A stretch of 64,000 nucleotides of DNA from Perkinsela sp. CCAP 1560/9 (GCA_965644495.1 CBFFSA010000018.1:62001-126000), one strand, 5' to 3'. Positions 1 to 49,337 are shown, counted from the stretch's first letter. The notes: generated from the sequence alone by a model not told the origin. Translations and numbers: made by a program.

Positions 1-417
1 CAGCCGGAGGGGCGTACTGCAACCGACTCGGTCCCAGTCGGTAGAGGTGGTCCAGGCAACTCACCATCTCTTTACGCAGCCGGAGGGGCGCACTGCAACC
101 GACCGCTGCCTCGCGATAATGCAAGGCAGAGTCACGCCCAGTGGTCCTCAAGGGAGGCCACCATGGCGCATAGCTCCCGGGAAGAGACAGGCGCGAGAAG
201 AAGAAAGCCGGGGAGGGAAGAAAACTCACTCAAGGAGTGAGCCGGGGAGGGGTGAAAAGTCGGAAGTACGTCCCCTACTTCCACGACAAAGAGGGACAGT
301 TTCCGCTAGCCGTCAGCCGGAAACGGGCATTTAAAAGGAAAATGTATGCCCGTTTCCGGGAAAAGAAAGGAAGGGCTAGCAAAATGTACCAACAAGGTAC
401 AGAAACTGTATCTTTAT
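1..417 (-). mobile_element. SL-headed non-autonomous retroelement (SINE-like), subfamily B; 3' part runs off the window
   Basis: Minus strand begins ATAAAGATACAGTTTCTGTACCTTGTTG (417-390), then GTACATTTTGCTAG and a CCGGAAACGGGCAT...ATGCCCGTTTCCGG hairpin. Homologous to 17250-17820. Interrupts an LRR gene. Confidence 0.85.
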
Positions 418-757
418 GCATGACAACAAGCTGGCGTGGCAGTGCCTCAAGCTCCACCCTTCCTGTCAAACGGCTGTACCATATGTAACACCTGAGTAAT
501 GTGTGGGGTAGACAATTCCATTGCAGCGTTCCCGCAATTTCCCCAGGACGTTTCCAGTTAAGGTCAGTAACGTGCATGCCGTCATCACATTCTACATCAC
601 GCCAATTACACGCAATTGTTGATGTGGTCCATGAGGGATCTGTATTTTGAGTATGCTCAATGAATCGTGCGAGATCGTATTCTTGAGGCAATTCTGCACC
701 TCGCACCTTAGACGGCAGTCTAGGCTGTGTCGAAATGTCAGAGGTGTGACAGAGCAT
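418..757 (-). pseudogene. LRR protein, 5' part, interrupted by SL-headed element
   Basis: KVRGAELPQEYDLARF...CNWRDVEC cap plus LRR, broken at LPRQLVVMH| where SL-derived KDTVSVPC starts. Confidence 0.85.
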
Positions 758-946
758 ACATATGAAGCAAAGTTCTGATGAATGAAACGAAAAAGTAATA
801 TCGTACTTGTAACGTTTAGTATAAAAAAGTGCGGATTGTCGGCGGATACAATATGTATTTCCAAAGCGCTAATTTTACTTCAGGGTTTTTCCTTCACCTT
901 GAAATGATCACCTTTACCCCATTAAACAAATACAAACTGCAACGCT

Positions 947-1768
947 TCAAAATTCCACACAAGAGGGCACGAACTCCTTCGGCGCGCGTAGACCCTTATT
1001 CCACGACAAATCCACCCGAATCACACCGGAAGGAATCTTCTCCAGCACAGCTACTCCACTAAACTGATTGTGGGAAGCAAGCAGTCGCATAAACCCTGCT
1101 GGGAGATTTCGAATCTCCACCTCCCCACTTAACTGGTTATGCGACAGCGTAAGCTGTTCCATAGACTGCGGCAACGCCGAGAACCCCACCGACCCTGTGA
1201 ACGCATTATGCGACAGTGTCAACATACGAATCTTAAACGGGAGAGCGGAGAGATTCACGGCTCCGTGGAACCGGTTCCGGGACAACAACACCTCCCTTAT
1301 CCCCACAGGGAGCTCAGCCAACTCTAGTGTCCCCTCGAGGACATTGTCCACCGCAGCGAGCACCCGCAACTCATGCGGGAGGTTCCGGGTTGCCAACGGC
1401 CCACTGAACCGGTTATGGGTGAGTTGCAGCTCACACAGGGAGCGGGGAAGGGAGGCGAACCCCACAGCCCCGTCCAGGGCATTCCCCCCTTGGGCGGTGC
1501 CAAGGGTTAGGGAGGTGAGGGTGGGAGGGAGGTGGGTCCACAAGGGGCGACCACGTAGCTTGCGGTCATCCCACCGGATACGACACACGTGGTGGCGTTC
1601 CTTGTCCAGGTACACCCCGGACCACTGGTCCACGGGACGGGAGAGGGTCCAGGAGGGATGACGAGGAGAGATATCGCCAAGGAACCGGTCGAGGTCGTAT
1701 TCAGGGGGAAGCTGAGCCCCCCGGACCCGTGCGGGTCGGGCAGAGTCCGCGAGGGATAGGGGGTACAT
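947..1768 (-). CDS. LRR protein (family cap + ~7 23-aa repeats)
   Basis: RVRGAQLPPEYDLDRF cap; LPxxLxxLxLxxNxFxG repeats; probable start MYPLS at 1768. Confidence 0.85.
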   Translation of the reverse strand: MYPLSLADSARPARVRGAQLPPEYDLDRFLGDISPRHPSWTLSRPVDQWSGVYLDKERHHVCRIRWDDRKLRGRPLWTHLPPTLTSLTLGTAQGGNALDGAVGFASLPRSLCELQLTHNRFSGPLATRNLPHELRVLAAVDNVLEGTLELAELPVGIREVLLSRNRFHGAVNLSALPFKIRMLTLSHNAFTGSVGFSALPQSMEQLTLSHNQLSGEVEIRNLPAGFMRLLASHNQFSGVAVLEKIPSGVIRVDLSWNKGLRAPKEFVPSCVEF

Positions 1769-2029
1769 GGTGGGGGTGTGAAAATGTGGGTGGTTGAGAA
1801 TAGGTTTGTGACTGTGTATACCACCCTCAAGGTTATTATTCACATTCAAAGTATGGTTTCTTTGCGAATAGTATAGTCCCCAGAAACACGAAACGGAAAT
1901 ACACCCCTTCTCAGAAGTGCGCCCCCCTGGGAAATTTTGATTCTCTTATTTTATCCGTTTTTGCTCATTTTTGTTGCATTTTGTAGATCTTTGTAAAAAA
2001 TAGTACTTTGCTACAGCCCATGAGTACTG

Positions 2030-3179
2030 GGCCCCAGTTGTGTGGTCGGACGAGACCAATATCTCGCGCTTTCAAACGGGGAGGTCTTTGTGCATGAGGG
2101 ATTCCTGGGGAGGAACTAGGTGGAAAAGGGGTGATCCCTACGGTGAAATATGGAGGGGAGGACATCATGATTTGGACGTATGTCCTGAAGCGGTGTGGGG
2201 TATGTGTATAAAGATACAGTTTCTGTACCTTGTTGTTCATCCTTTCTTTCCACGGCAACAGGCATAGTCTTACTGTAATTATATGCCCGTTGCCGGCCGG
2301 CACTAAGGTCAGGACTGTCCCTCTTTTCGTTGAAGCAGGGGACGCGCCTTTCACCCTTCACCCCTCCCCGACTCACTCTCCTGGAGTGAGTGTGCTTCCC
2401 TCTCTCGGCTTTTCTTTCTCGTGTCTACCTTTCCGAGGAGGTAATGCGTCACGGTGGCCTCCCTTAAGGACCACTAGACGTGTCCTTCGCTACGACTTCC
2501 GGCTCTCCGCACCTGGCGGTCACCCAGCTCTCCACACCTCGACTCTGTCGCAGCTCTCTGCACCCGGATTGCCCCCGAAACTGTAATATGGGGATTACGC
2601 ATCCGGCTCTCTGCACCTGCACATGACAACCGAGCTCTCTGCACCTGGGACGCCAGCTCTCTGCACCCACTTGCCACAGGCGAAGGCGAACCCTCGCGTG
2701 ATCCACCCGTCGTATGCGGGGTAAGGACATGTAGTGAGGCAAATCTCTGCATTATAAGTGCATGAAAAAAACAACTCTGGTTCAAGGGAACCTGAAGATT
2801 CTTGAGAATCTTTTCCCCTCTATCGAAAGTATCGGTCTAAATCCTCCAAGGCTGTCTCCCAACAAGATAACGACCCCAAGAGCAATCCGTTGTGCGCAAC
2901 GGTACCTTCGGGGTACCAGGATTGAAGTTGTGCGGTGGCCCCCGCAATCCCCTGACTTTAATCCCATTGAGACTCAAGCGGCGCCTTGCAGCACACTATG
3001 ATCCCCCAAGAGGTGTCCGAGAGTTGTGGGAGAGGGTCAAGATGGAAAGGGCGGACATACCACCCTCAGCATGTCGTGCTCAGGTGGACTCCTGTAGATT
3101 GCGAAGACGAAAGATAATCGATGGTAGGACTGGAACTTCGACGTCTTTTTATCGGAGGCTCTTGACAATCGTATCTTGA
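2030..3179 (+). mobile_element. Degenerate IS630/Tc1/mariner transposase, interrupted by SL-headed element
   Basis: DDE motifs in broken frames: WSDET, VWG, QQDNDPK (~2860), WPPQSPDFNPIE (~2935-2970). TIRs not identified. Confidence 0.8.
2208..2771 (+). mobile_element. SL-headed non-autonomous retroelement, subfamily A (spliced-form copy)
   Basis: SL relic 2208-2235 joined directly to TTCATCC; GCTCTCTGCACC internal repeats; ends ATCTC-TGCATTATAAGTGCA-TGA-A-tail. Confidence 0.9.
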
Positions 3180-3517
3180 AATCTTAATCTTGCAAACCAG
3201 AACATGTATAACATCACAAATACGAGATTTTCCAGAACTACTCTTTAAGATATGTATTCAAAATAATGTAAATGATACCATTTTCAGAAAACATAAATAT
3301 GGTACTTTAACAAAAAAATCTCCTTTTAAAGATTTTAAGACAAGAGAGAGTTTTAAGACAAGGGATCCCATGCAAACCTCTTTTCAATGAAGGTCTGGAG
3401 GAGAACTCTCGCTTTCGGGCATTGATCTCTTTCCTTCAACGTCGTGCACATTTGAGTCTCTCATTTCCGACTCACCTAGTCCTTCGGGATGCAGCTTCTC
3501 TGCAGTCGATCCCCCTG

Positions 3518-6500
3518 CTAAGCCGGATCACCCAAAATGTGATCCATCTCCACCACCCCTGCACCCGCCTCTGTACCATTCTCCCCGCCTCGCTCCTTCT
3601 CCCCGCCTCGCTCCTTCTCCCCACCATTTTCCGAAAAAATACCGCCTTGCGATACCTCTCGCAACGCCGAATCTTGCGACACATCCTGCGAAATCACTAC
3701 AACCTCTTTCCCCCCCTTTTCTTCTTCCTCCTCCCTCTCGAGTTCTCCTTCTTCCCGAGAAGACTTCCCCCCCTCGTTCTCCCCCTTTTCCACTTCCTCC
3801 CCACCCCCCTCATCTCCCCGAGAAGAACTCTTCTCCCCTTCCCCTTCCCCCTTCTCCTTTCCCTCTTCCCCACCCACCATCTCCCTCTCTTCCCCTACAG
3901 AACCCTTCTCCCCTCCCCCCTTCTCCTTTCCCTCTTCCCCACCCACCACCTCCCTCTCTTCCCCCACAGAACCCTTCTCCCCTTCCCCTTCCCCCTCCTC
4001 CTTTCCCCTCCCCTCTTCCCCACCCACCACCTCCCTTTCTTCCCCTACACAACCCTTCTCCCCTTCCCCTTCCCCCCCCTCCTCCTTTCCCCTCCCCTTT
4101 TCCCCACCCACCACCACCCCCTCTTCCCCACCCACCACCACCCCCTCTTCCCCACCCACCACCACCCCCTCTTCCCCACCCACCACCCCCTCTTCCCCAC
4201 CCACCACCTCCCTCTCTTCCCCTACACAACCCTTCTCCCCTTCCCCTTCCCCCCCCTCCTCCTTTCCCCTCCCCTCTTCCCCACCCACCACCTCCCCCTC
4301 TTCCCCACCCACCACCCCCTCTTCCCCACCCACCACCTCCCTCTCTTCCCCCACAGAACCCTTCTCCCCTTCCCCTTCCCCCTCCTCCTTTCCCCTCCCC
4401 TCTTCCCCACCCACCACCTCCCTTTCTTCCCCTACACAACCCTTCTCCCCTTCCCCTTCCCCCCCCTCCTCCTTTCCCCTCCCCTTTTCCCCACCCACCA
4501 CCACCCCCTCTTCCCCACCCACCACCACCCCCTCTTCCCCACCCACCACCACCCCCTCTTCCCCACCCACCACCACCCCCTCTTCCCCACCCACCACCAC
4601 CCCCTCTTCCCCACCCACCACCTCCCTCTCTTCCCCTACACAACCCTTCTCCCCTTCCCCTTCCCCCCCCTCCTCCTTTCCCCTCCCCTCTTCCCCACCC
4701 ACCACCTCCCCCTCTTCCCCACCCACCACCTCCCCCTTCCCCCCCCGTTCCCTCCCCCCCCTCCCCCTCCCCCCGCCCTTCCCCCAGTACCTCAGCAGGG
4801 CCCCCACCAGCCTCCCCCGCCGCTTCCCCGCCCCCCCGCACCCCACCCCCCTCCCCCGCGCGTACCCCTCCAGCTCCCCCACCCGGTACCACTGCAGCAG
4901 CTGCCACGCCGAGGTGTCGGGCCCGATCGGGGGCCGGTGCGCCACCAGGGTAGCGTGGGGGACGCGGGCGGGGGCGGTGAGCATGGCGTGGGCCGTGGCG
5001 GCGGGGACGGGGGGGTCGGCGGAGGTGACCCAGTGGACGGGGACGGAGCGGCTGGGGTCCGTGCAGAGGGCGATGAGCTCATCGGGGGTGGGGGGAGCGG
5101 CCATAGTACTTGTGGGGGTAGAGGCCGCAGTGGCGATGGTATTTGTGGGGGTAGTGGCGATAGGACTTGTGGGGGTAGAGGCCGCAGTGGCCATAGGGGG
5201 TGTAGGGGTAGCGGCCATGGGGGGTGTAGAGAGGGGACGGGGAGTCTCGGAGGGGATAAGGGTTGTTATGGTGGATAGGGAGACGAAGGGGCTGTTGTTG
5301 TTGTTGTTGTTAGGTTGCGTTGGTGAAGGGGTAGAGAATGTGGTGTTGGGTTGGAGTGAAGTTGTTTTTTGTTTTTTATGGCTTGGACGGGGAGGTTTGG
5401 GGTTGGTGTCTTTGAGGGTGCGAGAGTTGCGAGCTTTCGACGGGCGGGTAGGGGTTGTTTTGGTTTCTTGTCCCTTTTCTGGGGTTTCGGATGATGTGGG
5501 GGATTTTGTTATCCTGTTTTTTTTGGTCGAGGACAATCCAAAAGTGTTGTCTACTTTGGCAAGAAATGTTCTTTTGCGGCTGGAAGGGGGGTTGATGCTG
5601 GTAGGAGTTGCATCATTCGGGGAGGGATGGGTTTCGGGAAACAAACTTAACGGAGAAGAGCGCAATTGTGAGGTAGGAGAGGGTCGTGCCGGGGGTGTCT
5701 CAAAGGAGCTGTCTTTTCCAGTGGCCGAAAGATTGGCAGAAGAGGCTAATGAAAAAGACGTAGAAGGAGCGAGATTTGTAAGAAGTGCGGTTTTGGAGGG
5801 TGGGGGTGTTGATTCAGTTGGCAGTGCAGATTCTTGGGTAGCAGTTGATGCTTTTAAATTGGATGGATCTGAGTCCATGACGAGTGACTGTGCTAAAGGT
5901 TGTGCATTAAAGGCTAGATCGCTTGAAACCGGCGCCTCTACGGATAATTCCGAAGGCTCCGTTGGTTGTGCAAGCTCACTCGTGGGATGTGAAGTCTCAG
6001 GTCGGTGAGCAATAGAAACAAGATTACAAAACGTCCCGTCCAAAGATAAACGGGAAATAAAGCATGTCAACGTCCATCGTGCTGCAGGCTGAATGTGTTT
6101 CGTCGGTAACCCAATGCCTCTTGCCGTCGCTTCAAGTTGTCGCCTTGAGAATCCGGATAGCAAGGCATTGATTCCCAAAGCGATGTACCAATTTAGTAAA
6201 TCTCCTTCGAAAATTTCGTACATTGCGTGATGCTTGGCAATGGGCTCAATGTAGTTATAACATTCCTGATGTTTCGAAGGTTGACCCAAATAAGCGGCTT
6301 CATTAAATTCTGAAAGCGCCTTTTCGGCTTCTAAGGTCAGACTTCCATCCCGAAGGGTCTCTTCCCCGGGCTGCGCAGAACTGTCGCTTGACTGCTTCTC
6401 AGCAGCAAGAGTGTGCCCCACCATCTGACGAAGACGCGCTTGTGCATTTCGATAAATGAATTGCAAGGCCGCTTCTACACTCATGGAAGGATCCAAAGAG

Positions 6501-6643
6501 TAGTAATGCCTCACCGACTGTTGCAATAGTCCTTCTATTTTCATCAGAAGCAGGAATATAAACTCAAAATCAAAATAAAACGGAAAAGACATAAACGGTA
6601 TCAGACTCACTCGCCTTATTGTTTTAGAAACAAAGCAGCACAA
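3518..6643 (-). CDS. Hypothetical protein with P/S/T-rich middle and G/E/V tandem-repeat C-terminus
   Basis: 1041-aa ORF in cluster orientation with a globular-looking N-terminus; exact start uncertain. Confidence 0.65.
3800..4740. repeat. Coding minisatellite (18/21-bp units within larger higher-order units)
   Basis: Repeats of ctcttccccacccaccac(cac)ccc encoding GGEEGVV(V), alternating with [22 protein letters not shown] blocks. Confidence 0.9.
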
Positions 6644-7081
6644 TCATACACAGTCCAGCTCTTGGCTTGCTCCCCCCCACCCCCAGGCTCCAGAGCACAC
6701 CGTAAGAGATTTTGACCCAATTCCTTCGGCATTCAACAGATCTCAAAAAAAGCTAGCGCGTTTCCCACCGTTTGTTACCCTAGATAGCGTTCGTAAAACG
6801 AGATTAGTACAGGACCAGCCTATGAGTTTTTAAGCTTACCGTATACTTCCCCCAGTAAGGTACCCCACCTAGCCAGTTTTGGGCTGACCCCCAGTAAGAG
6901 AGATTTGGCTCGGGAGCCCCACAGGAGGCGTATAGGGGGTAGGGGGTGGGTGTCTGCATGTTGAGGGCCTCGGGGATAACCCAAAGAAGCGTTTTAACAC
7001 ATTTTCACAAGAAAAAATACTAATATTTCTCGGCCGTTGTTTTCACAAGGTACATCCTTTCACAAGGTGTATCCTTTCTTC

Positions 7082-7490
7082 GAGCGGTGGTGCGCCCCTC
7101 AAAATGACACATTTTTGACCAAAGAAGGTGAAAAAGTATTTTTCGGACCCCAAGGGGCCTTTGTGTGTCGAAAGAATGGTGTGGTTGGAGTCGCATTCTC
7201 CACCCAACACGTTCGGTAGGCTTTGCTTCATCCCTACGAGTCATTTCCCACACGCAAACATCAGATTTAGTGCTTTGAGAGCAAAAATACGCGAAAATCA
7301 CCCCGTTTTTACCCGAAAATCGGCTATTTTTGGCTATAATCTTTCCGTTTTCTTCAGCTTTCCTGACCAATTTTTCTTTTTTAGGCTCTGCGTTTAACGC
7401 GGTGGTAGTTTTCAACGCGAAGAGCGCAGCATGAGTGACTTCTAAGTTGAAAACAACCACCGCGTTTAACGAAGAGCCTGAAAAAGAATT
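7082..7490. repeat. Dispersed ~400-bp repeat ending in a ~97-bp palindrome (MITE-like)
   Basis: Similar to 15090-15487. Inverted repeat aggctctgcgtttaacgcggtggtagttttcaac...gttgaaaacaaccaccgcgtttaacgaagagcct at 7383-7479. Confidence 0.75.
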
Positions 7491-7799
7491 ACTTAAATGA
7501 ACGAAAAGACATCAAAAGTACGCCAAAATTTATTTTATAGTCCGTAAGTGGGGTTCGAAAGAAAGTGAAGAAGACTCAAGAGCAAAAGATAAAAAAAAGA
7601 AATCAAAGAAAATAATGAATAAATCGCGGCAATGACAGTCGTGCAAGTATTTGAATGCAAGTCTTCAATAAGTTAGTATTGTGATTTCAACCGTGCGGAT
7701 GACACCGGGAGCCGTTCTTATACGTTTTTCTGGATTATTAACATTGGAAAATAATAAAACTTTCAAGGATAGGAACGCATGGATAATGCATGTAAGAGC

Positions 7800-9149
7800 T
7801 CATGTTTCATGATAGAGTTTTCGTTCCGTGGCAATGCGATGCAGTGCTGCTTTCAACTCCAAATTATTTCGACGGAGTATTGCAGCCTCACCTTCCAGAG
7901 AATCTGTCTTTTTCTGAAGACTGATTTGCGTGCTTTGAAGAGATTTAAGTGCTTGTTGCGCCTCGGACCGCTCATTTTGAGCCTCTTTGCACAATTTTTG
8001 ATTGTCATCGTCCTGCCTCTGATATTCACGTAGATCAATATTAACAGTCGCGTTTAAGAACTCGTGAATTATTTCGTTGAATTGTACATTCTGGGCCTCC
8101 ATAGACTGTATTTGAACACCAAGACGGGTATAACGTAAAAAAACGTCCAAACATTGAGAACACGAGTCGTTGTAAGATTTGACGTTCGAGTGCTCTCGAG
8201 AAGAAAACAAACTTGAAATCCATTTCAGTGCACTACGTTCTTGCGATACCTTGCAAGCACTCAAGGGTACGAAAATTGGATGTCGAGTTATATTTCTTCT
8301 TGTTACCCAGTTTTGAGCATGATTCATTTGTTCTTGCACTAGCTCAGTACCACTCTCCACATTTTTTAAAGCAATTTCTAAATCTGCTCCTTTGATGCAT
8401 GCCAACTCTCTTGTTTGATTCAAAGCCAATACATAAGCTTCCATGATCGGTGAAACGCTCTGTAATATTTTATTTTCTTTGGAGAGAGATCCGCTTTCAG
8501 TTCTTTCACACTCCAATGCATTTGAGAGATGCTTCATTGTCTTGCTATTATCTTCATTAAAACGTTCTAGCTGCTGCAATTTCAGGTCTAGCGTACTATT
8601 TTGTGTTTTTAACTGCTCGTTTGCGTTATATAAATCCTTGCAGTGTTTTTCTTGCGAGTCATGCAAAGCAGCCAAATTCACGAAAATTTGTACAGTTTCA
8701 TGCACGTCCTTTTCCAGCAATGCCAAAGATGTTCCCAGTCGATGATAAATGTTCTGAAACTCTGTTGTAGAATCGACTGCACTCCAGGTTTTATCGTCTT
8801 CTGTAGAAATAACATGTTCTCGCTTGGACAATTGTTTCTTCAAAAAAGATAGCTGCATGCGTAAGTCTTGAATGACGCTCTCTCTTTGCTGTAATTCGCG
8901 GTCAATGCGCCGTTGAGAAGCCTCTAATTTTTGAACACGAAGACGGTGCTGAACACTCAAGTGTTGTATTTCTTTCTCAAGTCTCGTCTCTTGTTCGGAA
9001 CTTACGAAGAATGGGTTCGCAGGCACCTTGGAAACATTTGGTGCACCTCTGTCAAGTGCGCCGTGCTTTTTAAGATTTTTTTCTGCTTCGCCTTTCGTTT
9101 CCTTCAATGATACCTCAGGCTCCTCAGATAACGTCGTATTAATCGTCAT
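7800..9149 (-). CDS. Hypothetical coiled-coil protein
   Basis: 449-aa ORF rich in L/E/Q/K heptads. Confidence 0.7.
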   Translation of the reverse strand: MTINTTLSEEPEVSLKETKGEAEKNLKKHGALDRGAPNVSKVPANPFFVSSEQETRLEKEIQHLSVQHRLRVQKLEASQRRIDRELQQRESVIQDLRMQLSFLKKQLSKREHVISTEDDKTWSAVDSTTEFQNIYHRLGTSLALLEKDVHETVQIFVNLAALHDSQEKHCKDLYNANEQLKTQNSTLDLKLQQLERFNEDNSKTMKHLSNALECERTESGSLSKENKILQSVSPIMEAYVLALNQTRELACIKGADLEIALKNVESGTELVQEQMNHAQNWVTRRNITRHPIFVPLSACKVSQERSALKWISSLFSSREHSNVKSYNDSCSQCLDVFLRYTRLGVQIQSMEAQNVQFNEIIHEFLNATVNIDLREYQRQDDDNQKLCKEAQNERSEAQQALKSLQSTQISLQKKTDSLEGEAAILRRNNLELKAALHRIATERKLYHET

Positions 9150-16282: not shown

Positions 16283-16743
16283 TTTTAATTACAGTCAAAT
16301 ATTCAATTACGATATTACCGGGGAGAAACTAAGTTATGTCAACAAAAGACGTATTAATTTAATTAACACATGAAATTAATAACACATGAATTAATCACAT
16401 GAAAAAAGCTTTGTAGAAGGCTATCTGAAGTTCCAAACTCTCTAAGTACGATACAGAAGCAGATTTCGAAAAAAATTACTTTTTATGAATAAAATTTTCA
16501 CAATCACGCAATGAGTCCTACAGTACATGTGCTACAGTATGTGCCTACAGTATGTGCTATTTCAGTGATCAGTCCAGTTGCAAAATTTTAGTTTCAGTAA
16601 ATGCTTTGCACCTCATGCTTGACGGTAGTAAGCGTACGTGCACTGTACCCGTGAGCTCGGCGTTGTTACGAAGCGAAAGACTCTCTATTCTAGAAGGCAG
16701 ATTAGTAAGCGTTACATCACCGCAGAACTTATTCACTGACAGT

Positions 16744-17181
16744 TTGTTCGTTCATGCACTTATAGTGCAGAGATTATGCTCACAAAGTCCGTGCCCGCAT
16801 ACGACGGGCGGATCAAGTGAGGGTTCGCCCTCGCCAGAGGTGTGCGGGTGCAGAGAGCTGGGGTCCCAGGTGCAGAGAGCTCGGTTGTCATGTGCAGGTG
16901 CAGAGAGCCGGATGCGTAATCCCCATATTACAGTTTCGGGGGCAATCCGGGTGCAGAGAGCTGCGACAGAGCCGAGGTGCAGAGAGCTGGGCGACCCCCA
17001 GGTGCGGAGAGCCGGGAGTCTCGTCGGCGGAGGACACGCCTAGTGGTCCTCAAGGGAGGCCACCGTGACGCATTACCTCCTCGGAAAGGTAGACACGAGA
17101 AAGAGAGCCGAGAGAGGGAAGCACACTCACTCCAGGGGAGTGAGTCGGGAAGGGATGAAGGGGTGGAAGCGCGTCCCCTGA
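16744..17181 (-). mobile_element. 5'-truncated non-autonomous retroelement, subfamily A
   Basis: Matches the 3' ~430 nt of 23959-24537; lacks the SL head; ends ATCTC-TGCACTATAAGTGCA-TGA plus a short extra tail. Confidence 0.9.
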
Positions 17182-17249
17182 ATCAACGAAAGTAAGGTTG
17201 CAGGAAGATGACAAAGATCAATACTACCCGTAAATTGATTGTACGACGT

Positions 17250-17820
17250 TTGATGCTCATGCGCTCGTTGGCGCAGAGATACAGCCCTTGATGCGACAGC
17301 CGATATCATCGGCACAATCCGTAATGACGGATGTCGCACCAAGGGGGTTTAGCACGGATTCTGTCGGTAGAGGGGGTCCAGGCAACTCGCCCTCTCTTTG
17401 CGCAGCCGGAGGGGTGCACTGCAACCGACTCGGTCCCAGTCGGTAGAGGTGGTCCAGGCAACTCACCACCTCTTTACGCAGCCGGAGGGGCGCACTGCAA
17501 CCGACCGCTGCCTCGCGATAAGACGAGGCAGAGCCACGCCCAGTGGTGCTCAAGGGAGGCCACCATGGCGCATGGCTCCCCGGGAAGGAAAAGGCGCGAA
17601 AGTAAGAAATACGGGGAGGGAAGAATACTCAATCAAAGAGTGAGCCGGGGAGGGGTGATGGGGTGGAAGCGCGTCCCCTACTTCGCCGAGAAAGAGGGAC
17701 AGTTTCGGCCTTAGTGCCGGCCGGCAACGGGCATATAAACAGTAAGACTATGCCCGTTGCCGGGGAAAGAAAAGATGAACTAAAGGAAAATGTACCAACA
17801 AGGTACAGAAACTGTATCTT
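17250..17820 (-). mobile_element. SL-headed non-autonomous retroelement, subfamily B
   Basis: SL relic 17820-17796, then GTACATTTTCCTTTAG, the 5' hairpin and two ~76-bp internal repeats; ends ATCTC-TGCGC-caacga-GCGCA-TGA. Confidence 0.9.
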
Positions 17821-18552
17821 CAACGAAATCAAACGCGGTGGAAGGCCTACGAGGTCTAATTCCCCGCTAAGCTTGTTGTTGTACACTGAAAATTCAAGTA
17901 GAGACCTAGGCAGTGTACTCCATTGAAATGAACCCATCAATCTTTTCCCTTTCGCCACAAACCCCAAGATTTCCCTTCCGCCCGAACAATCAACCCCTTC
18001 CCACTGGTGTGCAGGTACGGAGGTGTTCCAAGAAGGAAGCGGATTCACTATGTTACTTACCAAACGCTCAAGCTCGTACTCCAAGGGTAATGCCACACCC
18101 CTTACTTTCCCGGCCTTTCTGTTTTCGCCCGCTGTGTCGGAGAACTTAAACATGACGGAATGATAAGGCAGACGTAGCGAGTCTGTCGTGCGATCTGTGA
18201 AAATCACATTCATCGTAGTGGAAATACTAAATGCACAAGTAATAGTGTAAATTTTGTATACCTTTAATAGACGACGCGAATAAAGAATGTTTTGTGAATG
18301 CCAAAATATACCAAAATGTATCACAGCAACTTGAATATCTTGACTAATCCATTGTGATATCCTTTTAGACTGTGTTTTGTCGCGTCAAATCCTACATGTA
18401 CCGCATCGCGGAACAGACTCTGTTATCCTTCCCAGATTCTGTTATGTTATCTGATGAGGTTATTTCTCCTGTACATAAGAAGTACCCAGCAAAACATGTA
18501 GAAAACGACGTCGTACAAACCAGAAATGTATTTTAAACGCACTCACAATAGT

Positions 18553-23741: not shown

Positions 23742-23958
23742 ACAGGGTAGACTAATGTATTAAACGGGTTACAGGTTAACATACCGAGAATTCCCCCCCC
23801 CCCTACTTTTTCCCTACCAATCACATCATAATATATTGTTCCAGCGCGCCACAACTGTTGCTAACTGTAATTTCCGTTTCGGAAACATCGTAGATCATGT
23901 CCACATGTGCCCCTACAATTTGTAGGTTGCCCCGCAATTTCACATTGTTATGTATGTG

Positions 23959-24537
23959 TTTTATCATGCACTTATAGTGCAGAGATTTGCTCACCATGTC
24001 CTTATCCCGCATACGACGGGTGGACCATGTGAGGTTTCGTCCTCGCCGGAGGTGTGCGGGTGCGGAGAGCTGGCGTCCCAGGTGCAGAGAGCTCGGTTGT
24101 CATGTGCAGGTGCAGAGAGCCGGATGCGTAATCCCCATATTACAGTTTCGAGGGCAATCCGGGTGCAGAGAGCTGCGACAGAGCCGAGGTGCGGTGAGCT
24201 GGGCGACCGCCAGGTGCAGAGAGCCGAGTCTCGTCGGCGGAGGACACGTCTAGTGGTCCTCAAGGGAGGCCACCGTGACGCATGGCCCTCTCGGAGAGGA
24301 AAAAGACAAGTCGAAAAAAAGCCGAGAGGGGGAAGCACACTCACTCCAGGGGAGTGAGTCGGGGAGGGGTGAAGTGGTGAAAGCGCGTCCCCTGCTTCAG
24401 CGACAAGAGGGACAGTTCCGACCTTAGTGCCGGCCGGCAACGGGCATGAAAATACAGTAAGAGTATGCCCGTTGCCGGGGAAAGAAAGGATGAACTAAGG
24501 AAAAAGTACCAACAAGGTACAGAAACTGTATCTTTAT
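23959..24537 (-). mobile_element. SL-headed non-autonomous retroelement, subfamily A, full length
   Basis: SL relic 24537-24510, then GTACTTTTTCCTTAG; nearly identical to 48753-49324. Confidence 0.92.
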
Positions 24538-24599
24538 CATCGTCCGAAGAGATGCAGGTAGCGCACTAAAATCAATATTGCCTTCAAAATTGTTGAAAG

Positions 24600-24603
<4 letters not shown>

Positions 24604-24630
<27 letters not shown>

Positions 24631-27600
24631 TATCATGTAGAAAATATTCTACAGAGATCAGACGGTGAATATGGGAGTTCCATATTACGCGCACAAAACG
24701 CGTTGAAATCACCTGACAGTCAGCGACTCACTCCCCAGAACTAACCTCCATCCACTGTTTGTTCTCGCGGTGCTGGAAAATTATGAAACTTCCCCGGAGA
24801 GCGCTACTCGTCATATTTCGGCGACACACTGCAACCGCTTCTTCATTTCCCATGTAGAGAGAGTTGAGCGTTCGGGCCGACATATGCAGTTTGCCTCTCG
24901 CTCCCACCTCGAAGACGAGTAGGAATGTGGTAGGATGGTCGAGTTTTCTAGAGTGATATAAACTCGTGTACTTTTCTATTTTGCGCTCGTGTGCGAACTC
25001 AAAATTCTCCTCCCAAGGGCAGGTAAGTTCTATAATGTATTCTTCTCCGTTAGATAGTTTCACCCATCCGTCAGGACGTAGCTCAGTATCAAGGTTCGTG
25101 AGCCACGCGGGGGTGGAGCGGAAGTGGGGGAGATCGAAGTGACATTGACTAGTGGAGGAGAATCGTTGTACGGAGTTCGCTAATGCCTGTAGTACCATGT
25201 TATGCCGTAGGGTATACCTCCCTTGTTCGAGTGACTTCCTACAACCAGATAGAATATGCCGCGTAGTTTGTGTCTCAGTGTCACATATGGGACATTTATC
25301 GCTCGCATGTCGATACGCCCCACCTACGAAGAGATGCCCTGGTTGGGAGCGGCGTCTCGGTAAGCACTGAGGATGTGAACCGCGAAAGCGATTCACTCTT
25401 GAGGTTGCATAGGGCGGCGGCGAAGACTCTCGCAAGGTCTGCTTCCGTTGCGATTCTGAACCATCGTCCTGCTACGGCAGTACGCCGTTGGACGGCTTCC
25501 GTGAGGTGTCGCTCGTATTCGCTTCCAAGGAGTCTTCGGACGTTACTATGGCTTGTACTGTGCATATCCGTCGGCGGGCGAATGTATCCTGCTCTCCTTT
25601 TGTTCGCTTCTCGCCTGATGCGCTCACGTAAAGCGTGCTGGACCTCGGGATCACGCGATTTATCCATTTGTTCCATTGTCCCCACAGTGGAAAGAAGCCA
25701 AAGTTTTGACAGACTCATGAGATTCCAGCCATGCTCTGAATAGAGCAGCTCACTAGTTGCTGATTTCGCTACGTTTAACCATTTCCGAATTTCGCGTGTG
25801 GCGCATCGCTGTAGACGAAGTACGTGATTGAAGGTAAGGCATGAGTTCACGACGAAGGAATACCGCAGACGAGAGATGATGCCGTTATTGTATATCCACA
25901 GGCGCGCGGGAAGGTCATGTGCGCTGGAAGATATATTACGCAACCAGGCTCGCAGACGGGTTCGTAGTTTTAGAAAGAGTGTCTTGCCTTGTTGAGCACC
26001 GGGTGCGAGCGTCATGCCTAAAAATGTGCTACCATTATCACATATGTGTGGGATAGGTGACGTGCCGATCATGATCTGTGGTCGGCGTGTCATATATCCA
26101 GAGTCTTGCGTCATCGCCATGTGTTGCAGCCGGCATTTTTTCACGTTTAGTTTCATCCCAATATCGCTTAGAACTTTGACGAGTGCGTTTGTAGCATTCT
26201 GCATTTCCTGGGGGGTATTTGTCAGAATAGTGAGGTCATCTGCGAAGGCTTTTAGAAAAATTTCTTTCGCATTCCACGTGATCCCGTATTCGGGGCAACT
26301 TGAACGGACAAAACGCAGAACTAGCTCCATCGCCAAGTCGAATAAAATAGGTGAAAGCGTATCTCCCTGCAATACACCACGACCTATCTCAATAGACTTC
26401 GTGAGTCCTTCTGCACATTTAATTTGTATAGACGCTCGTTCGTACAGCGCTTTGATGTAGTTAATGAGGATCGGTGAGACGCGCGCCCATTTTAAGGCCT
26501 GAAATAAAATTGTATGGGGTATAGATCCAAACGCGTTTTTGATATCAAACTAGGCAAGCACGTATTGCCTTTTGTGGCGCCGCTGGTGCTCGAGGAGCTC
26601 GCAAAGGACCTGGGTGTGCTCAACTGTCCCATTCATATGCGGCAAGAAGCCTTTTTGTATTGTTGTGTCCAGGGCATTGGAATCCAGGGAATGCTGAAGG
26701 ATACGGTGACTGAGGATTGAGTGGAAAAGCTTCCCAATGCAGCTAGTCAAGCTTATCGGCCGCCAGTTTTCCATACTTGAGGTGGGGCCCCCTTTGTGGA
26801 TAAGTCGAGTGACCGCAGTTTTCCAGGTTGGAGGGCATACACCAAATTTTAGGACATCATTAAACACCTGTGCCATGTGAGTAAAGACAGGGGCGCAGCG
26901 CTTTAGCAGCGCGTTCGATACAGTGTCCGAGCCTGGGGCAGCCCCAGAGCGTTTGGATGCGACGGCTGCTGCGATCATGTCTGAGTCAATATCTGACCAT
27001 TGCATCTCATCAAGGGGAATTGGTTTCGTAAATTCTGCGGGAGGAATCTTGTGTATCTCTTCTGGTCTAGACATTGAGCCCACAAAGAATCTTTCAACCT
27101 CCTGTACAGGAACTGTAGGGTAGGACGTCTCAGTTTCTGAGGTAGATGGGTCGACGCGATCTAAGCATTCGCCCGCGGCTGTCCAGGGATTTCGCTGGAA
27201 TCGCGTAAGAGCCCACCGTCGATCGATTTCTTTCCTCTGCATACTGGATTCTTCCATTTACTGCTTTAGTGCCTTTTCGGCTTCCTTTATTTTCCCTCGT
27301 TGCTTGTTTCTCGCAGGACCCTTCATGAACGTTAGCGCACGTTTAAGTTGTCGAACGTGTTGACTGAGTACTTTCACTGTGCGTTCAATGGCTAAGGGTC
27401 GTGAGTTTCTTCGGGCTCTGCCAGTTCTGGTCCGTATAAGAAAGCCGTGCGTCGGATCGTTTTCCCGTGCGGCCTCGAATGCAGTTACAGCGAGGATTGC
27501 TGAGAGTATTTCAGCTTGCGACAGGGCGTCCTCTTTGTTTCGCGCCAGGTGGATATACGAGTTGCAGCGTTCCTCGATCTTCGCAATAATACTCTCCCAC

Positions 27601-29477
27601 TGTTCCTCTGTGAAACGGACTAAAACGCGACCTCCATTCATTGTGCGGAATGTTTCGAGTAGGTTCTGCAGTTCAGGGAGAGGTCGGGTAGCCGGGACTT
27701 ACCGGACACGAGGGATGCGCTGCAATATCGTGTGTTCGCAGTTTCCTTCTGGTGGGGGAGGTAAAGGTAAGGGCAGAGGCGTGGGATCTGTTGCGGACTG
27801 CACAAGGGGTAAAGAAGGTGAGGAGCGGCGTACAGAAGGGGAATCATGTTGCGGGGCGTGGACAAGTGGTGCATTCCGCACAGGGCTCAGTATTGGACTC
27901 GAGCGATTCGAGGGGTTTGTGTGAACTGGGGGGTAGGTTGTTGCGCGTGGAGGGGGCGGTAGTGAAGCTTTTGCGGCGCGTTCCGCATCACCCATTGCAG
28001 GGCACAGTATATTTCTCGTGGTCCAGCATATGGCAGAGTACGCTACTTCAGCGACTTTGAGGAGAACTCCTTTCTGGCAGCATTGATGTTTACATGTTGC
28101 CTTGTCCTTACATTTATGAGCGCAGTTGCGACGAGGGGCTGTTGGGGCAGGGGTGTTGTTGTCATTGCTGGTGTGCAGGTCTGGAGAGGTACGGACGGGT
28201 TCGCGGAGTACAACCTCCGTGCTAGGTTGTATGACACCATTTTTGCAACATCGATGCTTGCACTGAGCTTTGTTGCTACATATGTGCCGACAGGGGCGAT
28301 AATTGACTTCATTGGTTGATGTTTGTGTGTGGTGTGTGGCGTCATCCATGCATCCTAGTGAGGGCGGATTTACGGTCGGGAGCTCCGGATCCCTGACCTC
28401 TTCGAAGTGTCCGATGTCTGGTGTGGTATGCTGATCGGTGTCTATGGATAAGTCTGCTGGTAGTGGACTACTTGCTCGAGCTATGGGTGGTTCCACGAGG
28501 GGTAGCACTGGTTGAGGACTACTTTGGGCATTGTAATGGGGACCCCCACTTTGCAACACTTGTGCAGACAATTTCTTTTGTCGCGGCATGTGTGTTTGCA
28601 CGGTCTTCTGTGAGAAGTAAGTGAGGGTTCCATAGGGGCAACGTCCTCGGGAGAGGGAAGAGACACGTTAGGCGGAAGAGATCCTTCGTGTCGTACTTTG
28701 CAACATGCGTGGAGACACGATGTTTTGTCCCGGCATTTATAAGCGCATGAGGCACGTGGTTCGAGAGCGTGTTTTGAGGCATATGATGGCGGTGACACCT
28801 TGTAAGAGTCATCTCGGATCCTATAGGGTGCGTCGTAGGTGATCTCTGGGTGACCCCGTAGTAGTTCAATGGGTTGTGTTTTTCGAGTTACGTGTGTGAT
28901 TTGGAATTTTCGTAATCCTGGGATGTCACTACCACATAATTTCTTCGTGACCGCTTTGCCGAGCGCGTTCGAAGAGGAGTACACTGCGTTAAGCTGCATG
29001 AACGAATCCCTGTAGGCGGAACTCCAGCTGGCGTGACAAAACGTGCGACTTGGGTTTCCCGTTTCTTGGTATTTTAGGTGTTCACATGCGTTGTTTTCAA
29101 TGACATCTTGAATTGTACACGATTTGATTATCAGACCATCACTTCTTTTGCTTTCCGACTTCAAGGTTTTGCCGATCGAGGCTTCAGCCGTGTGGACACT
29201 CGAGAAGAACTCTCGTTCTGTGAGGGCAATGGCTGCGGCATGCGTGTCTGGGAAATATGACCATGTGACGCTGTCCGAGGGGCGGATTTTGACGGGCATC
29301 GCTCGACTTTGGATGAAGTGAAAGCTCTGGGGATGTCGCTGCGCGCTGACAGGTCCTCGAGGGAGGCCGTCGTGCGCGATGGGAGCCGGTGAGGTGACAT
29401 TGGAGGCCATGCTCCGGAAGATAAAGTTAGTACAAAATTGAAAATAATTCAACAAGGTACAGAAACTGTATCTTTAT
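24604..29477 (-). mobile_element. RLE-type (R2 group) non-LTR retrotransposon, SL-headed, degenerate single ORF
   Basis: SL relic 29477-29450; ATG at 29410; four Cys motifs; RT motifs (APGSD, WRPISL, QKGF, DIKNAFGSIPH, QGDTLSP, FADD); CCHC knuckle CPICD...HILSGC; endonuclease RPDG...IELTCPWEE...KIEKY; (TA)n tail. Has two in-frame stops and about three frameshifts. Confidence 0.95.
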
Positions 29478-30010
29478 TGACAACCTCAATCGAAGGTGGT
29501 AAGAATAAGAAATTTGGAGTTCCAGAAAATTCGTTGTATGAGAGTGAAAGAATTTTCAATGTTACCGGTAAGAACTGAAATGGCACTTCGCCAGAGAGCT
29601 GGTTTTCCCAGATTTCGAAGCACTCTAAGCTTGACGGTAAGTACTTCCAATTTAGAGACCCGGAAAGATATTCTCTGCTCCAATCTATTGCAATTACACC
29701 TTGCTTACCACATGTCACCCCACCCCAATTTTCTACGTCCATATTAGTGTCCCGCGAAAAGTTTTCCACATCTTGTGTAAGTCGCGCTAAATCGTATTCC
29801 TGTGGGAAGGACACCCCACGTACTTTTGATGAACGTTGGACGTGATGATCATCAGAACTTGGTGTCATGTGGTCCTTTGTACCGGTTTCCTTGGGTAGTG
29901 CGTGACTATCGGTAAAGTGGAAGGAAAAGAGCATTACTGAGGAATAATGTGCCACCGAATAAAAGCAAGAGAAATTAAACCTGACTTCTAGCTTTTCGAA
30001 AAGCGAGGTA

Positions 30011-39683: not shown

Positions 39684-39803
39684 TATATCGTATTGTATAC
39701 TATTGTCATACGAGTTCATAGTGTGAGCATAACACATGGAATAAGGAATTTTGTCCAGAACAACCACACTTGACATGTTGCACAGAAATTTACGGCTGTA
39801 ACC

Positions 39804-45660: not shown

Positions 45661-45781
45661 TGAGATCTACTTTGAAATTATACGATACCCTTTCTCAACG
45701 TCTGAACCCCCTCCCACCTCTCGTGTTATTGACATTCAATAGTTTTACCCATTCACCAAAAATACACACTCTGTGAACCAC

Positions 45782-47413: not shown

Positions 47414-47580
47414 TCATGCTGCGATCTTCGCGTTGAAAACTACCGCCGCGTTTAACGACGAAGGATTCACACTAATTGATGCATTTACAACATTTTTTCA
47501 GCGATAAATCGACAACGAATCAGTAGAATACGGCTGCAAAATAGCCAGAACGGGGTTGTAAATAATAGTGTGAAGGGGGT

Positions 47581-48225
47581 TTAAGTTAGTGATACAATTT
47601 CAATTTCAGTCTCTTGAAAGGCCTTGTACAAAAGGCCTGCCGGTAGCATGTGCTCATGTAGGGTCCCTGTAAGTTTGGCGTTGCTACGGAGCGGTAGGTA
47701 TTTCATTCCAGAAGGCAGATTGGTAAACGTTACATGACCACGTAAGTTATTCGCCGACACTATCAGCGAAGTTAATGTCGAAGGAAGATGACAAATATCA
47801 ATACTACCCGTAAATTGATTGAACGACGCGTCAAAAGAAAATAAAAGTGGTGGAAGGTCTACGAGATCGAGTTCCCCACTAAGTCTATTTTTATACACTG
47901 AGAATCGGGTTAATGACCTTGGAAGAGTACTCCAACGAAAACTGCCAACCAGTTTTTCATTCTCCACTTCGAACGATAGAATTGCCCCTTCGTCAGAACA
48001 TTCGACCCCTTCCCACTTATTCGCAGGTACAGATGTATTCCAAGAGGGAAGTGGATTCACTATGTTACTTACCAAACGCTCAAGATCATACTCTTGGGGT
48101 AATAGCACACCTCTTACTTTTCCAGCCTTTCGATTCTCACCCGTTGAGTCGGAAAACTTAAATTTTCCAGGATGAGAAGAAAAATGTGGCCATTTCGACG
48201 TACAATCCATTATAACACTGTACAT
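47581..48225 (-). CDS. LRR protein (FSDxxGE subfamily)
   Basis: Intact paralog. Confidence 0.9.
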   Translation of the reverse strand: MYSVIMDCTSKWPHFSSHPGKFKFSDSTGENRKAGKVRGVLLPQEYDLERLVSNIVNPLPSWNTSVPANKWEGVECSDEGAILSFEVENEKLVGSFRWSTLPRSLTRFSVYKNRLSGELDLVDLPPLLFSFDASFNQFTGSIDICHLPSTLTSLIVSANNLRGHVTFTNLPSGMKYLPLRSNAKLTGTLHEHMLPAGLLYKAFQETEIEIVSLT

Positions 48226-48752
48226 ATTAAAGATTAATTTTACTTGAAGATAGCATTTGCGGATAAGATTCCCAGGAGTGCCTATTTTCGATCAAAATAA
48301 AAGTAGATTTCGGAAGACAAAGGCGACTGTCTACTTTTCCTTTTCGTATTCTTAGCTCACATACTTTCACCTCTCCTAGCGTTATCCGATTCTAGTAAAA
48401 AGCAACGCTAGGATAGGGAGTATAGTTCGCTAGACATTTCCTCAAAATATGTTTTGTCACATGAAATATCCAGCATTGTTGCCATCAAGAGAAAATATGG
48501 GAAAACAATACACCAGTCCAACTTAACATGCCCCCCTCAAAGAGAAAGCTAGATGATCAAAGGATATTTTACAGTTGTATCCATTACATTTGATTGCTTT
48601 ACAGTTACGTTCTGCAATTACAAACCAATTCGTAGCTTCAAGTCGACGGCACCAACCAATTCGTTTTGGTGAAAAAAACGGAGTTATTATTACGCAGTTT
48701 TAAATATTATCTTAGTCTCTTCAATTTCTACAACTTTTTTGCCGCTACTAGG

Positions 48753-49337
48753 TTTTATCATGCACTTATAGTGCAGAGATTTGCTCACCATGTCCTTATC
48801 CCGCATACGACGGGTGGATCATGTGAGGTTTCGTCCTCGCCGGAGGTGTGCGGGTGCGGAGAGCTGGCGTCCCAGGTGCAGAGAGCTCGGTTGTCATGTG
48901 CAGGTGCAGAGAGCCGGATGCGTAATCCCCATATTACAGTTTCGGGGGCAATCCGGGTGCAGAGAGCTGCGACAGAGCCGAGGTGCGGAGAGCTGGGCGA
49001 CCGCCAGGTGCAGAGAGCCGAGTCTCGTCGGCGGAGGACACGTCTAGTGGTCCTCAAGGGAGGCCACCGTGACGCATGACCCTCTCGGAGAGGAAAAAGA
49101 CAAGTCGAAAAAAAGCCGAGAGGGGGAAGCACACTCACTCCAGGGGAGTGAGTCGGGGAGGGGTGAAGTGGTGAAAGCGCGTCCCCTGCTTCAGCGACAA
49201 GAGGGACAGTTCCGACCTTAGTGCCGGCCGGCAACGGGCATGAAAATACAGTAAGAGTATGCCCGTTGCCGGGGAAAGAAAGGATGAACTAAGGAAAAAG
49301 TACCAACAAGGTACAGAAACTGTACTGTACAGAAACT
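48753..49337 (-). mobile_element. SL-headed non-autonomous retroelement, subfamily A, with doubled SL fragment
   Basis: Starts AGTTTCTGTAC-AG-TACAGTTTCTGTACCTTGTTG; body nearly identical to 23959-24537. Confidence 0.92.

Follow-up and report, generated by a model that had tools for sequence, protein, structure and literature searches.

R2-like retrotransposons and short non-autonomous partners in Perkinsela probably target leucine-rich repeat genes at one codon of the repeat

Judged by its sequence, the genome of Perkinsela sp. CCAP 1560/9 very probably harbours R2-like non-LTR retrotransposons with a C-terminal restriction-like endonuclease (RLE), in at least two LINE subfamilies. We consider it likely that these LINEs and their short non-autonomous partners preferentially target units of leucine-rich repeat (LRR) genes by sequence recognition, with sense-oriented insertion at a single codon of the 23-residue repeat.

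Results

Insertions in the window

Seven insertions were found in the window (the whole 64-kb stretch of DNA analysed). Six carry a head derived from the spliced leader (SL), at 390 (-), 2213 (+), 17796 (-), 24510 (-), 29450 (-) and 49304 (-), where none would be expected by chance, and the seventh, at 17181, is a 5'-truncated copy (Table 1). The initial annotation had placed six of the seven in LRR genes, in sense and just past LPxxLxxL of the 69-nt unit. Flank translation confirms this: the sequences upstream of the LRR-located heads read LPRQLVVMH, LPPRLISL, LPASLRTM, LPPSIEVVN and LPEHLRKL up to the insertion point, and all six LRR insertions are minus-strand and point the same way as the LRR ORFs. 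Two genes were, as had also been noted there, hit in consecutive repeats (17820 with 17181, and 29477 with 24537). The T1 copy at 48752-49337 is 99.3% identical to the copy at 23958-24530, and the filler at its 5' junction is a duplicated SL fragment.

Intact paralogues (47581-48225, 33854-34447, 38198-38824 and 15569-16282) were used as empty-site references, and the site at 17181 is seen unoccupied in paralogues at 34029/34032 and 47762. An empty allele of an interrupted gene was also sought, and only paralogues at 65-71% identity were found.

Table 1. Elements and LRR gene segments in the 64-kb window.
Feature	Position	Strand	Evidence
T2 element running past the window start; head after LPRQLVVM(H) of LRR gene 418-757	1..417	-	
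T1 element outside LRR genes, interrupting a Tc1/mariner-like transposase remnant	2213..2774	+	
5'-truncated T1 element after LPATLLSL(I), one LRR unit further on in gene 16550-18324	16744..17181	-	
LRR unit between both insertions of gene 16550-18324	17182..17248	-	Matches paralogues 47762-47828, 34032-34098, 38373-38439
T2 short element, non-autonomous, after LPPRLISL	17249..17820	-	SL head and flank translation
5' part of the doubly interrupted LRR gene	17821..18324	-	
T1 short element, non-autonomous, full length, after LPASLRTM, one unit downstream of LINE-A	23957..24537	-	
Lone LRR unit (…SFNNFEGNIDFSALPASLRTM) between LINE-A tail and next insertion	24538..24606	-	PSSM score 39.7
Degenerate full-length LINE (LINE-A)	24607..29477	-	RVT_1 in broken ORFs; head at 29450-29472; 3' module at 24625-24669
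LRR gene 5' part, split by LINE-A after LPPSIEVV(N)	29478..29955	-	PSSM unit score 36.3 (locus L117)
Intact paralogue of the interrupted small LRR genes, empty-site reference	47581..48225	-	
T1 short element, non-autonomous, after LPEHLRKL	48752..49337	-	SL head and flank translation

The LRR target family

The target genes consist of tandem LxxLxLxxN-type units with the consensus LPxxLxxLxLxxNxFxGxLDLxx, and the LPxxLxxL motif is spaced at 23 residues in 146 of 211 spacings. Pfam matches of these genes to LRR_1/LRR_8 are weak, as is a match to LRRNT_2 on a neighbouring gene at locus L120. The genome contains about 6,500 LRR units, corresponding to around 2.1% of 21 Mb, and the LRR genes are probably individually dispensable.

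Anatomy and type of the LINEs

From 5' to 3', LINE-A is laid out as an SL relic, four Cys/His-rich motifs, a reverse transcriptase (RT), a CCHC knuckle, restriction-like endonuclease motifs and a 3' stem-loop followed by a TAAC(AT)n tail. It is frameshifted, and in the copy at L120, the single related one read into its C-terminal part, the nuclease region and the RT ORF are in different frames. RVT_1 was matched with Pfam in the broken ORFs 26550-27257 and 25296-26372 of LINE-A (E 2e-14 in the latter), and three-frame reading 3' of the RT gave C-x2-C-x8-H-x4-C, RHN, RPD-x13-E and K motifs. Across five members of the LINE family, C-x2-C-x8-H-x4-C, RHN/D, RPD-x13-E-L-T and K-x2-K-Y are conserved. 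The best solved relatives of the family member P0003 are R2 proteins (E 4e-26), with L1 ORF2p at 1e-16, and the C-terminal profile aligns weakly (E 0.09), motif for motif, with R2 residues 935-1087. A structure model of the LINE C-terminal domain had a mean pLDDT of 46.6, too low for a fold search. Sequence-search matches were ENA proteins without names.

The N-terminus carries four C-x3-C-x6-C-x-H-x-C-C motifs. Pfam returned nothing meaningful for the N-terminal ORFs, with no Exo_endo_phos match and no APE domain, and a search of the ESM Atlas with the Cys-rich N-terminal ORF gave no usable match. The LINE-type RT, the CCHC knuckle and PD-(D/E)xK motifs C-terminal to it, and the orientation-specific insertion, albeit of partial specificity, are those of RLE-bearing LINEs. 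The proposal in the initial annotation of an RLE LINE/SINE pair is thus supported by RVT_1, the nuclease motifs, R2 proteins as best relatives, and the 3' stem-loop and SL relic common to both partners.

Short elements, 3' stem-loop and SL relic

The short elements are around 570 bp long and non-coding, and fall into the subfamilies T1, T2a and T2b. They have the 3' stem-loop (…ATCTCTG-stem-loop-CATGA…) in common with the LINEs, and therefore presumably make use of the proteins of the LINEs. Compensatory changes are seen in 4 of the 9 pairs of the stem when the two LINE and three short-element subfamilies are compared. The stem-loop is followed by a tail of TAAC(AT)n, TAAACAA…, TAAAAC or ACATCAAAA. 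In being short, non-coding and alike at the 3' end to a LINE, these elements resemble SINEs. No pol III-type head (tRNA, 7SL or 5S) was found in the short element with a tRNA scan or Rfam; its head is an SL relic. Rfam gave nothing at gathering scores for the whole window and nothing at E ≤ 1 for the short element and LINE tail, and so lends no support to an HDV-like ribozyme.

The 5' ends of the elements carry the final 27-29 nt of the spliced leader, a relic starting at about SL nt 10-12, and this indicates that the template RNAs were most likely SL-trans-spliced transcripts. The short element is probably transcribed within polycistrons and trans-spliced, not made by RNA polymerase III. There are around eight SL genes in the assembly. 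The head was also considered as a fragment of an SL RNA gene with its intron, which was rejected, as the true gene has the intron GTATGAG… and the head runs into element sequence. A literature search with the SL sequence found nothing relevant.

Register, orientation and enrichment across the genome

The genome-wide sample of short elements comprised 84 of the 103 existing heads, leaving out 19 heads and those copies known only from their 3' ends (the genome has 66 T1 3' ends). A PSSM-defined LRR unit ends 0-30 nt before the head in 27 of the 84 copies, all of them sense. On the 3' side, the following unit ends 73-76 nt past the conserved CATGA in 17 of 50 copies, one of these being at 95 nt because its tail is duplicated. 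Taking either side, at least 32 of the 84 short elements are in register, all sense, and one extra copy in an LRR array is antisense and out of phase. LINE heads are in register in at least 4 of 9 cases, again all sense, and a related LINE in another assembly has the 3' register likewise, at 76 nt.

LRR background was estimated by counting a calibrated degenerate pattern, and the LRR-rich window served as an alternative null. Insertions are enriched in LRR units 67- to 350-fold, with P of 1e-41 to 1e-72 genome-wide and around 1e-23 under the most conservative null, the LRR-rich window. The initial annotation had named phase, orientation and LRR enrichment across the genome as the check on its claim of a fixed insertion position in the repeat, and in the 84 copies the claim withstood it. 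The preference for the LRR register is strong without being exclusive: it is followed by around 38% of all copies, by 65% of the youngest ones and, within subfamily T1, by 77% (77%, 45% and 21% by subfamily). Over half of the copies lie outside recognisable LRR DNA, at sites where neither a common motif nor a peak of GAT between -33 and -38 is seen. Many of these non-LRR copies sit in repeats or other transposons.

Older copies have a smaller LRR share, which drops from 15/23 in the youngest to 9/23 and then 5/24. This bears on retention bias, in which elements would insert near-randomly and survive better in redundant LRR genes as a safe haven. The abundance of LRR units and the probable dispensability of single genes are in keeping with such a bias, as is the presence of many non-LRR copies in repeats or other transposons. 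However, its prediction is the opposite of the LRR bias seen in the youngest copies, which therefore points to targeting rather than retention. Nor can tolerance account for a phase window of 7 nt in which 32 copies are sense and only 1 is antisense, and the synonymous sites of hit units are unlike those of their unhit neighbours (see below). Retention bias was rejected on the age trend and is most improbable as the explanation.

Insertions into LRR genes are independent events. The LRR flanks of different copies are dissimilar, with no pair reaching 85% identity over 100 nt, and the SL extent and filler vary from junction to junction. LRR families recombine readily, and tandem and consecutive-unit insertions are common, as would be the case if a single ancestral LRR insertion had been spread by duplication, unequal crossing-over or gene conversion. 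Against this, the adjoining flanks are unrelated at the DNA level, the elements themselves are alike to 98-99%, SL extent and filler are particular to each 5' junction, and the same register is found in three short-element subfamilies and two LINE families. Gene conversion was rejected on account of the dissimilar flanks, and spread from one ancestral insertion is hardly credible.

A DNA-level determinant in hit units

Some 35 nt upstream of the point of insertion, hit LRR units have GAT(C/T)T or TAGAT. GAT[CT]T occurs in 23/35 hit versus 60/283 unhit units (P 2e-7), and TAGAT in 12/35 versus 9/283 (P 7e-8). The bias extends to synonymous positions, with GTA coding for the Val before Asp in 11/12 hit versus 5/25 unhit units (P 5e-5). 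Only around two thirds of hit units have GAT[CT]T, which makes it a candidate rather than a defined recognition motif, and the contrast between hit and unhit units could be due in part to a preferred LRR subfamily or unit type. A downstream determinant was sought in 17 sites, with nothing significant found.

These contrasts weigh against the attraction of the elements by a non-sequence feature of LRR arrays, such as periodic DNA structure, R-loops, replication pausing or silent surface-gene chromatin. Arrays with a 69-bp period are unusual DNA and insertions do cluster within the same genes, but a feature of the whole array leaves unexplained the single-codon precision, the strict strand choice and the fact that hit and unhit units within the same arrays differ in synonymous codons. 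We regard such an attraction as very unlikely.

Targeting could alternatively be guided by nucleic-acid pairing, with the A-rich 3' tail or the SL head (GATAAAG…) annealing to the GAT Asp codon and its neighbours at LRR codon 8. The SL match reaches GATAAA in 10/27 LRR sites versus 6/57 others, which fits a target GAT at codon 8, and the fillers show annealing and template switching at the 5' junction. However, pairing over 3-6 nt cannot give the observed genome-wide enrichment, and the discriminating bases are some 35 nt upstream of the junction. The 3' tails have no consistent match with the downstream flanks, and the 5'-truncated copy at 17181 is in register without an SL head. Guidance by pairing is therefore improbable, if less so than the alternatives above.

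Discussion

Proposed mechanism

Under recognition by sequence, the integration machinery would recognise double-stranded DNA inside the 69-bp LRR unit. The recognised word would include GAT(C/T)T, often GTAGATCT, coding for V-D-L about 35 bp upstream, and probably also the Leu-Pro codons. The nick would then fall a set distance away, between LPxxLxxL and xLxxN (codon 8/9 of the unit), and target-primed reverse transcription would produce a sense copy with duplication or loss of at most a few nt. The 5' junction would be closed by template switching or microhomology, often leaving reiterated snippets of target and SL.

A stronger version of this, in which the elements form a dedicated LRR-targeting system, is possible but rather doubtful. 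The four N-terminal Cys/His modules would read the DNA word for the V-D-L…L-P turn, and the elements would act as a phased mutator that drives truncation, pseudogenisation and possibly reshuffling of a putative surface-protein family. The role of a repeat-phased mutator is suggested by the fact that LRR genes are broken at the same β-strand codon in every hit.

Relationship to known systems

R2 recognises its target via protein contacts tens of bp upstream of the nick, and its N-terminus has a C2H2 zinc finger and a Myb domain. The Perkinsela elements resemble R2 (28S rDNA; 8gh6, 9nl2-4, 9dou) in the order of RT, CCHC knuckle and PD-(D/E)xK-type nuclease in a single ORF, in sequence-specific sense insertion with little or no target duplication, and in a structured 3' end that non-autonomous partners can borrow. 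They differ in that R2 uses one invariant rDNA site, whereas their target is a degenerate protein-coding repeat with thousands of diverged copies, for which specificity is partial. Unlike R2, the LINE also has the N-terminal Cys/His motifs without a Pfam match, and the elements have an SL relic at the 5' end, with no ribozyme found by Rfam.

Members of the CRE clade (CRE1/2, SLACS and CZAR of kinetoplastids) are, like the Perkinsela LINEs, RLE LINEs of SL-using euglenozoans with zinc-finger-like motifs. They split the SL exon close to SL nt 10-12, where the Perkinsela relic begins. CRE elements are strictly site-specific and sense-oriented, insert into SL RNA genes and have a poly(A) end (PMC12278014). 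The Perkinsela elements differ in their LRR-gene target, in having a stem-loop followed by a short A-rich or (AT)n tail, and in their dedicated short partners. Their flanks are LRR or other DNA rather than a fixed position in SL RNA genes, and a poly(A) 3' tail is not seen.

Stringent-type LINE/SINE pairs, such as UnaL2/UnaSINE1 of eel, are similar in that the partner has the 3' stem-loop of the LINE, the stems covarying in Perkinsela. The Perkinsela short element is unlike these SINEs in having an SL relic instead of a tRNA, 7SL or 5S-like head.

Other target-specific LINEs include NeSL-1 in SL1 genes, Utopia/Keno in U2 snRNA, Dada in tRNA/U6 and Dong/Waldo/Kibi in microsatellites. These are similar to the Perkinsela elements in using multicopy sequences as insertion sites, but they all insert into RNA genes or simple repeats. 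Repetitive sequences, for example rRNA genes and microsatellites, are the targets of most RLE LINEs (PMC4640811). The literature searchable here yielded no description of a LINE with a protein-coding repeat as its target in codon register.

Implications

Site-specific RLE retrotransposons home to RNA genes, other transposons and simple repeats. In Perkinsela, the elements instead prefer a protein-coding repeat, which they hit on one strand and with the precision of a single codon. R2-type machinery would thus be able to adapt in evolution to a degenerate motif with thousands of diverged copies, which in our assessment bears on understanding, and possibly re-engineering, the targeting of R2-like integrases. 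As the subfamilies differ in specificity, target recognition is open to dissection by comparison. If the elements do form a dedicated system, they would represent natural retargeting of an R2-type integrase to coding DNA. The SL relics and reiterated 5' fillers would record the reverse transcription and joining of trans-spliced RNAs. For the protist itself, the elements would mean that a large family of LRR genes is disrupted repeatedly and in phase.

Elements and genes in the window

A 23-nt motif (GATACAGTTTCTGTACCTTGTTG) occurs six times in the window, five times on the minus strand and once on the plus strand; no occurrence is expected by chance. Self-comparison of the window delimited a short element of ~570 bp, present in several copies, and a single frameshifted long element (LINE) is also found. 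Only the short element within the transposase remnant lies outside an LRR gene. Window 3764-4786 is GC-rich and internally repetitive, with long ORFs overlapping on both strands (3422-5278, plus; 3518-6643, minus). An S-adenosylmethionine synthetase gene at 12471-13679 on the minus strand (Pfam E 1e-63) is intact, and therefore the window mixes LRR arrays with housekeeping genes.

Mobile elements and transposon remnant in the window
Feature	Position	Strand	Basis or remark
Short element	1-417		self-comparison
Tc1/mariner-like transposase remnant	1990-3100	+	reads …GGEDIMIW… and …WPPQSPDFNPIE…
Short element	2213-2774	+	splits Tc1/mariner-like transposase remnant
Short element, 5'-truncated	16744-17181		self-comparison
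Short element	17249-17820		self-comparison
Short element	23957-24537		self-comparison
LINE, single in window	24607-29477		broken ORFs with reverse transcriptase (Pfam RVT_1)
Short element	48752-49337		self-comparison

Insertion in one register of the LRR unit

The initial annotation placed the LRR insertions within 0-3 nt after LPxxLxxL of the repeat, all in sense orientation, and the window bears this out. The translated flanks 5' of the heads (the spliced-leader (SL) relics at the element 5' ends) finish in LPRQLVVMH, LPPRLISL, LPASLRTM, LPPSIEVVN and LPEHLRKL, and the 5'-truncated copy is likewise preceded by LPATLLSL(I). All six insertions are sense relative to the LRR ORF, and consecutive units are struck in two genes (17820 with 17181; 29477 with 24537). 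In the LRR gene at 16550-18324, nucleotide alignment to paralogues resumes either side of each element, with a few bases at most lost or duplicated; comparison with intact paralogues of the small LRR genes identifies the elements as simple insertions.

The search was extended to the assembly (21.0 Mb, 110 contigs), which holds 103 short-element heads and nine LINE heads. The sample comprises 84 of these 103 head-bearing short-element copies, read with flanks. The local LRR unit has 23 residues (LPxxLxxLxLxxNxFxGxLDLxx), and units were identified with a position-specific score trained on 127 units (cut-off at least 8 bits), which gives 96 matches on the window minus strand versus 0 in shuffled sequence. 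On the 5' side, a unit ending LPxxLxxL lies 0-30 nt ahead of the head in 27 of 84 short elements, in sense every time; once SL-matching bases are removed, about 20 of these junctions fall within -2 to +4 nt of the eighth codon's end, and the rest carry filler. On the 3' side, the next unit ends 73-76 nt past the conserved CATGA in 17 of the 50 copies whose 3' end is defined, including one at 95 nt due to a duplicated tail. By either side, at least 32/84 short elements are in register and sense. Phase, orientation and enrichment were the grounds for refutation named in the initial annotation, and the genome-wide copies did not refute the claim.

The genomic LRR background was taken from a calibrated pattern count rather than a random sample. 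A degenerate 33-nt unit pattern has 3,578 genomic sites versus 127 for its reversed control and detects 53% of profile-defined units, which gives ~6,500 LRR units, or ~2.1% of the genome. A random insertion would be sense and within the scored window in 0.1-0.5% of cases; the observed share is 32-38% (P = 1e-41 to 1e-72 genome-wide, ~1e-23 to 1e-30 with the LRR-rich window as null). Within LRR arrays, 32/33 copies share one phase and strand (P < 1e-19). The only antisense copy in an array (locus L037, G000:C1:1687157-1689357) is out of phase, ~10 nt off the usual register, and behaves as an untargeted insertion; one such copy is about the number expected from 50 untargeted insertions.

At least four of the nine LINE heads are in register, with three more within degenerate LRR-like sequence. 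Two heads of a related LINE subfamily are in register as well. A related LINE in assembly ERZ24900291 (63% protein identity) has a matching 3' register at 76 nt. Among short-element subfamilies, the LRR share is 10/13 in T1, 10/22 in T2a and 3/14 in T2b; LRR specificity is partial.

Targeting versus retention or spread

Spread by duplication or gene conversion is ruled out by the LRR flanks, no two of which are alike whereas the elements are 98-99% identical, and by the SL extent and filler, which are individual to each 5' junction. Alternatively, copies in LRR genes might simply be retained better. Copies were ranked by identity to their closest relatives, which stands in for age, and split into thirds: the LRR share declines from 15/23 in the youngest through 9/23 to 5/24 in the oldest, whereas retention bias would predict the reverse trend. 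At loci L061, L080, L085, L096, L098, L024 and L089/L090, the same sites or genes are struck repeatedly: jointly, they include short elements in head-to-tail tandem, a LINE with a short element directly behind it, and a further case of consecutive LRR units.

Probable recognition at the DNA level

Compared with 283 unhit units of the same loci, 35 hit units differ most at the position-19 codon and its neighbours, ~33-38 nt 5' of where the element inserts. GAT[CT]T occurs in 23/35 hit versus 60/283 unhit units (P 2e-7), and TAGAT in 12/35 versus 9/283 (P 7e-8). Among units encoding Val-Asp, the synonymous GTA codon is used in 11/12 hit versus 5/25 unhit (P 5e-5), and the bias therefore acts on DNA rather than protein. 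No downstream determinant was found (n = 17), nor was a common motif at the non-LRR insertion sites. As the R2 protein does, the protein here would probably read some DNA word located 5' of its nick.

LINE protein and shared 3' module

C-terminal to the reverse transcriptase, the LINE carries C-x2-C-x8-H-x4-C, RHN, RPD-x13-E-L-T and K-x2-K-Y, conserved in five family members. The closest solved relatives of one member are R2 proteins (E 4e-26); the top match of the C-terminal profile is the R2 nuclease region, with motifs aligned but a weak E of 0.09, and the structure model was too poor for use. The N-terminus (28040-28760, minus strand) has four spaced C-x3-C-x6-C-x-H-x-C-C motifs, which have no match in Pfam or Atlas and are a candidate target-recognition module.

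Two LINE and three short-element subfamilies have in common ATCTCTG, a stem-loop, CATGA and a short tail. Compensatory changes preserve 4/9 stem pairs, and this covariation supports a LINE/partner relationship via the 3' structure. No tRNA-like head was found in the short element, and no ribozyme in the elements. Locus L120 (ENA ERZ24900291 ctg3810l, 4900-8165) holds a related LINE subfamily with a T2b-type tail (CATGATAAACAA…), probably the autonomous partner of T2b. It has no SL head, and its 5' side lies outside the LRR gene on its other side. In this copy, the one relative read across the C-terminal region, the nuclease region and the RT ORF are in different frames.

Spliced-leader relics at the 5' junctions

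The 23-nt motif forms the 3' portion of the exon in the true SL RNA gene (L002), where GTATGAG… follows it. The SL core, CAGTTTCTGTAC, is of kinetoplastid/diplonemid type. The elements, by contrast, have their own sequence after the motif, and their head is therefore an SL relic rather than a fragment of the SL gene. Only ~8 SL RNA genes were counted in the assembly, including a pair on C1 separated by 297 bp, and their array is possibly collapsed or dispersed.

Relics usually start at SL nt 10-12, close to the point at which elements of the CRE clade interrupt this exon. The SL match upstream of GATACAG is 5-6 nt in 38/84 copies and at least 10 nt in only two. At many junctions (e.g. L025, L042, L059, L076, L078, L082, L084, L095 and L104), reiterated snippets of upstream target alternate with SL fragments, and at L061, L080, L103 and window 49327-49337 the relic is likewise preceded by 6-20 nt of upstream target and/or SL pieces repeated in tandem. 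These look like repeated template switching at cDNA-end joining. At L043 (G000:C1:4017206-4019406), the head reads …CTGTACCTTGTTG then TTTCTGTACCTTGTTG, with the SL 3' end joined just past a CAG inside an older relic, the arrangement expected had the transcript of a copy undergone a second trans-splicing at that AG.

Many other SL-motif matches consist of poly(A) with the full-length SL directly after it, then a short 5' UTR and ATG (L008, L010, L013, L014, L016, L017, L020, L021, L029 and L030). Several recur every ~5 kb, and the set resembles retroposed trans-spliced mRNAs in arrays, distinct from the LINE/partner family. Full-length SL is therefore copyable in this genome, although the LINE/partner relics are truncated at SL nt 10-12.

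Relation to known elements

In its mode of action, the LINE/short-element pair resembles R2 and other RLE LINEs that have a stringent 3'-structure partner. CRE-clade elements insert at one fixed SL position (PMC12278014). Two defining features of this kinetoplastid clade are an SL-gene target and a poly(A) tail, and the Perkinsela elements have neither. The literature searchable here yielded no description of a LINE that inserts in codon register into a protein-coding repeat. As read from the genome, we infer protein-DNA targeting of LRR units; that the elements might influence LRR gene evolution is conjecture.
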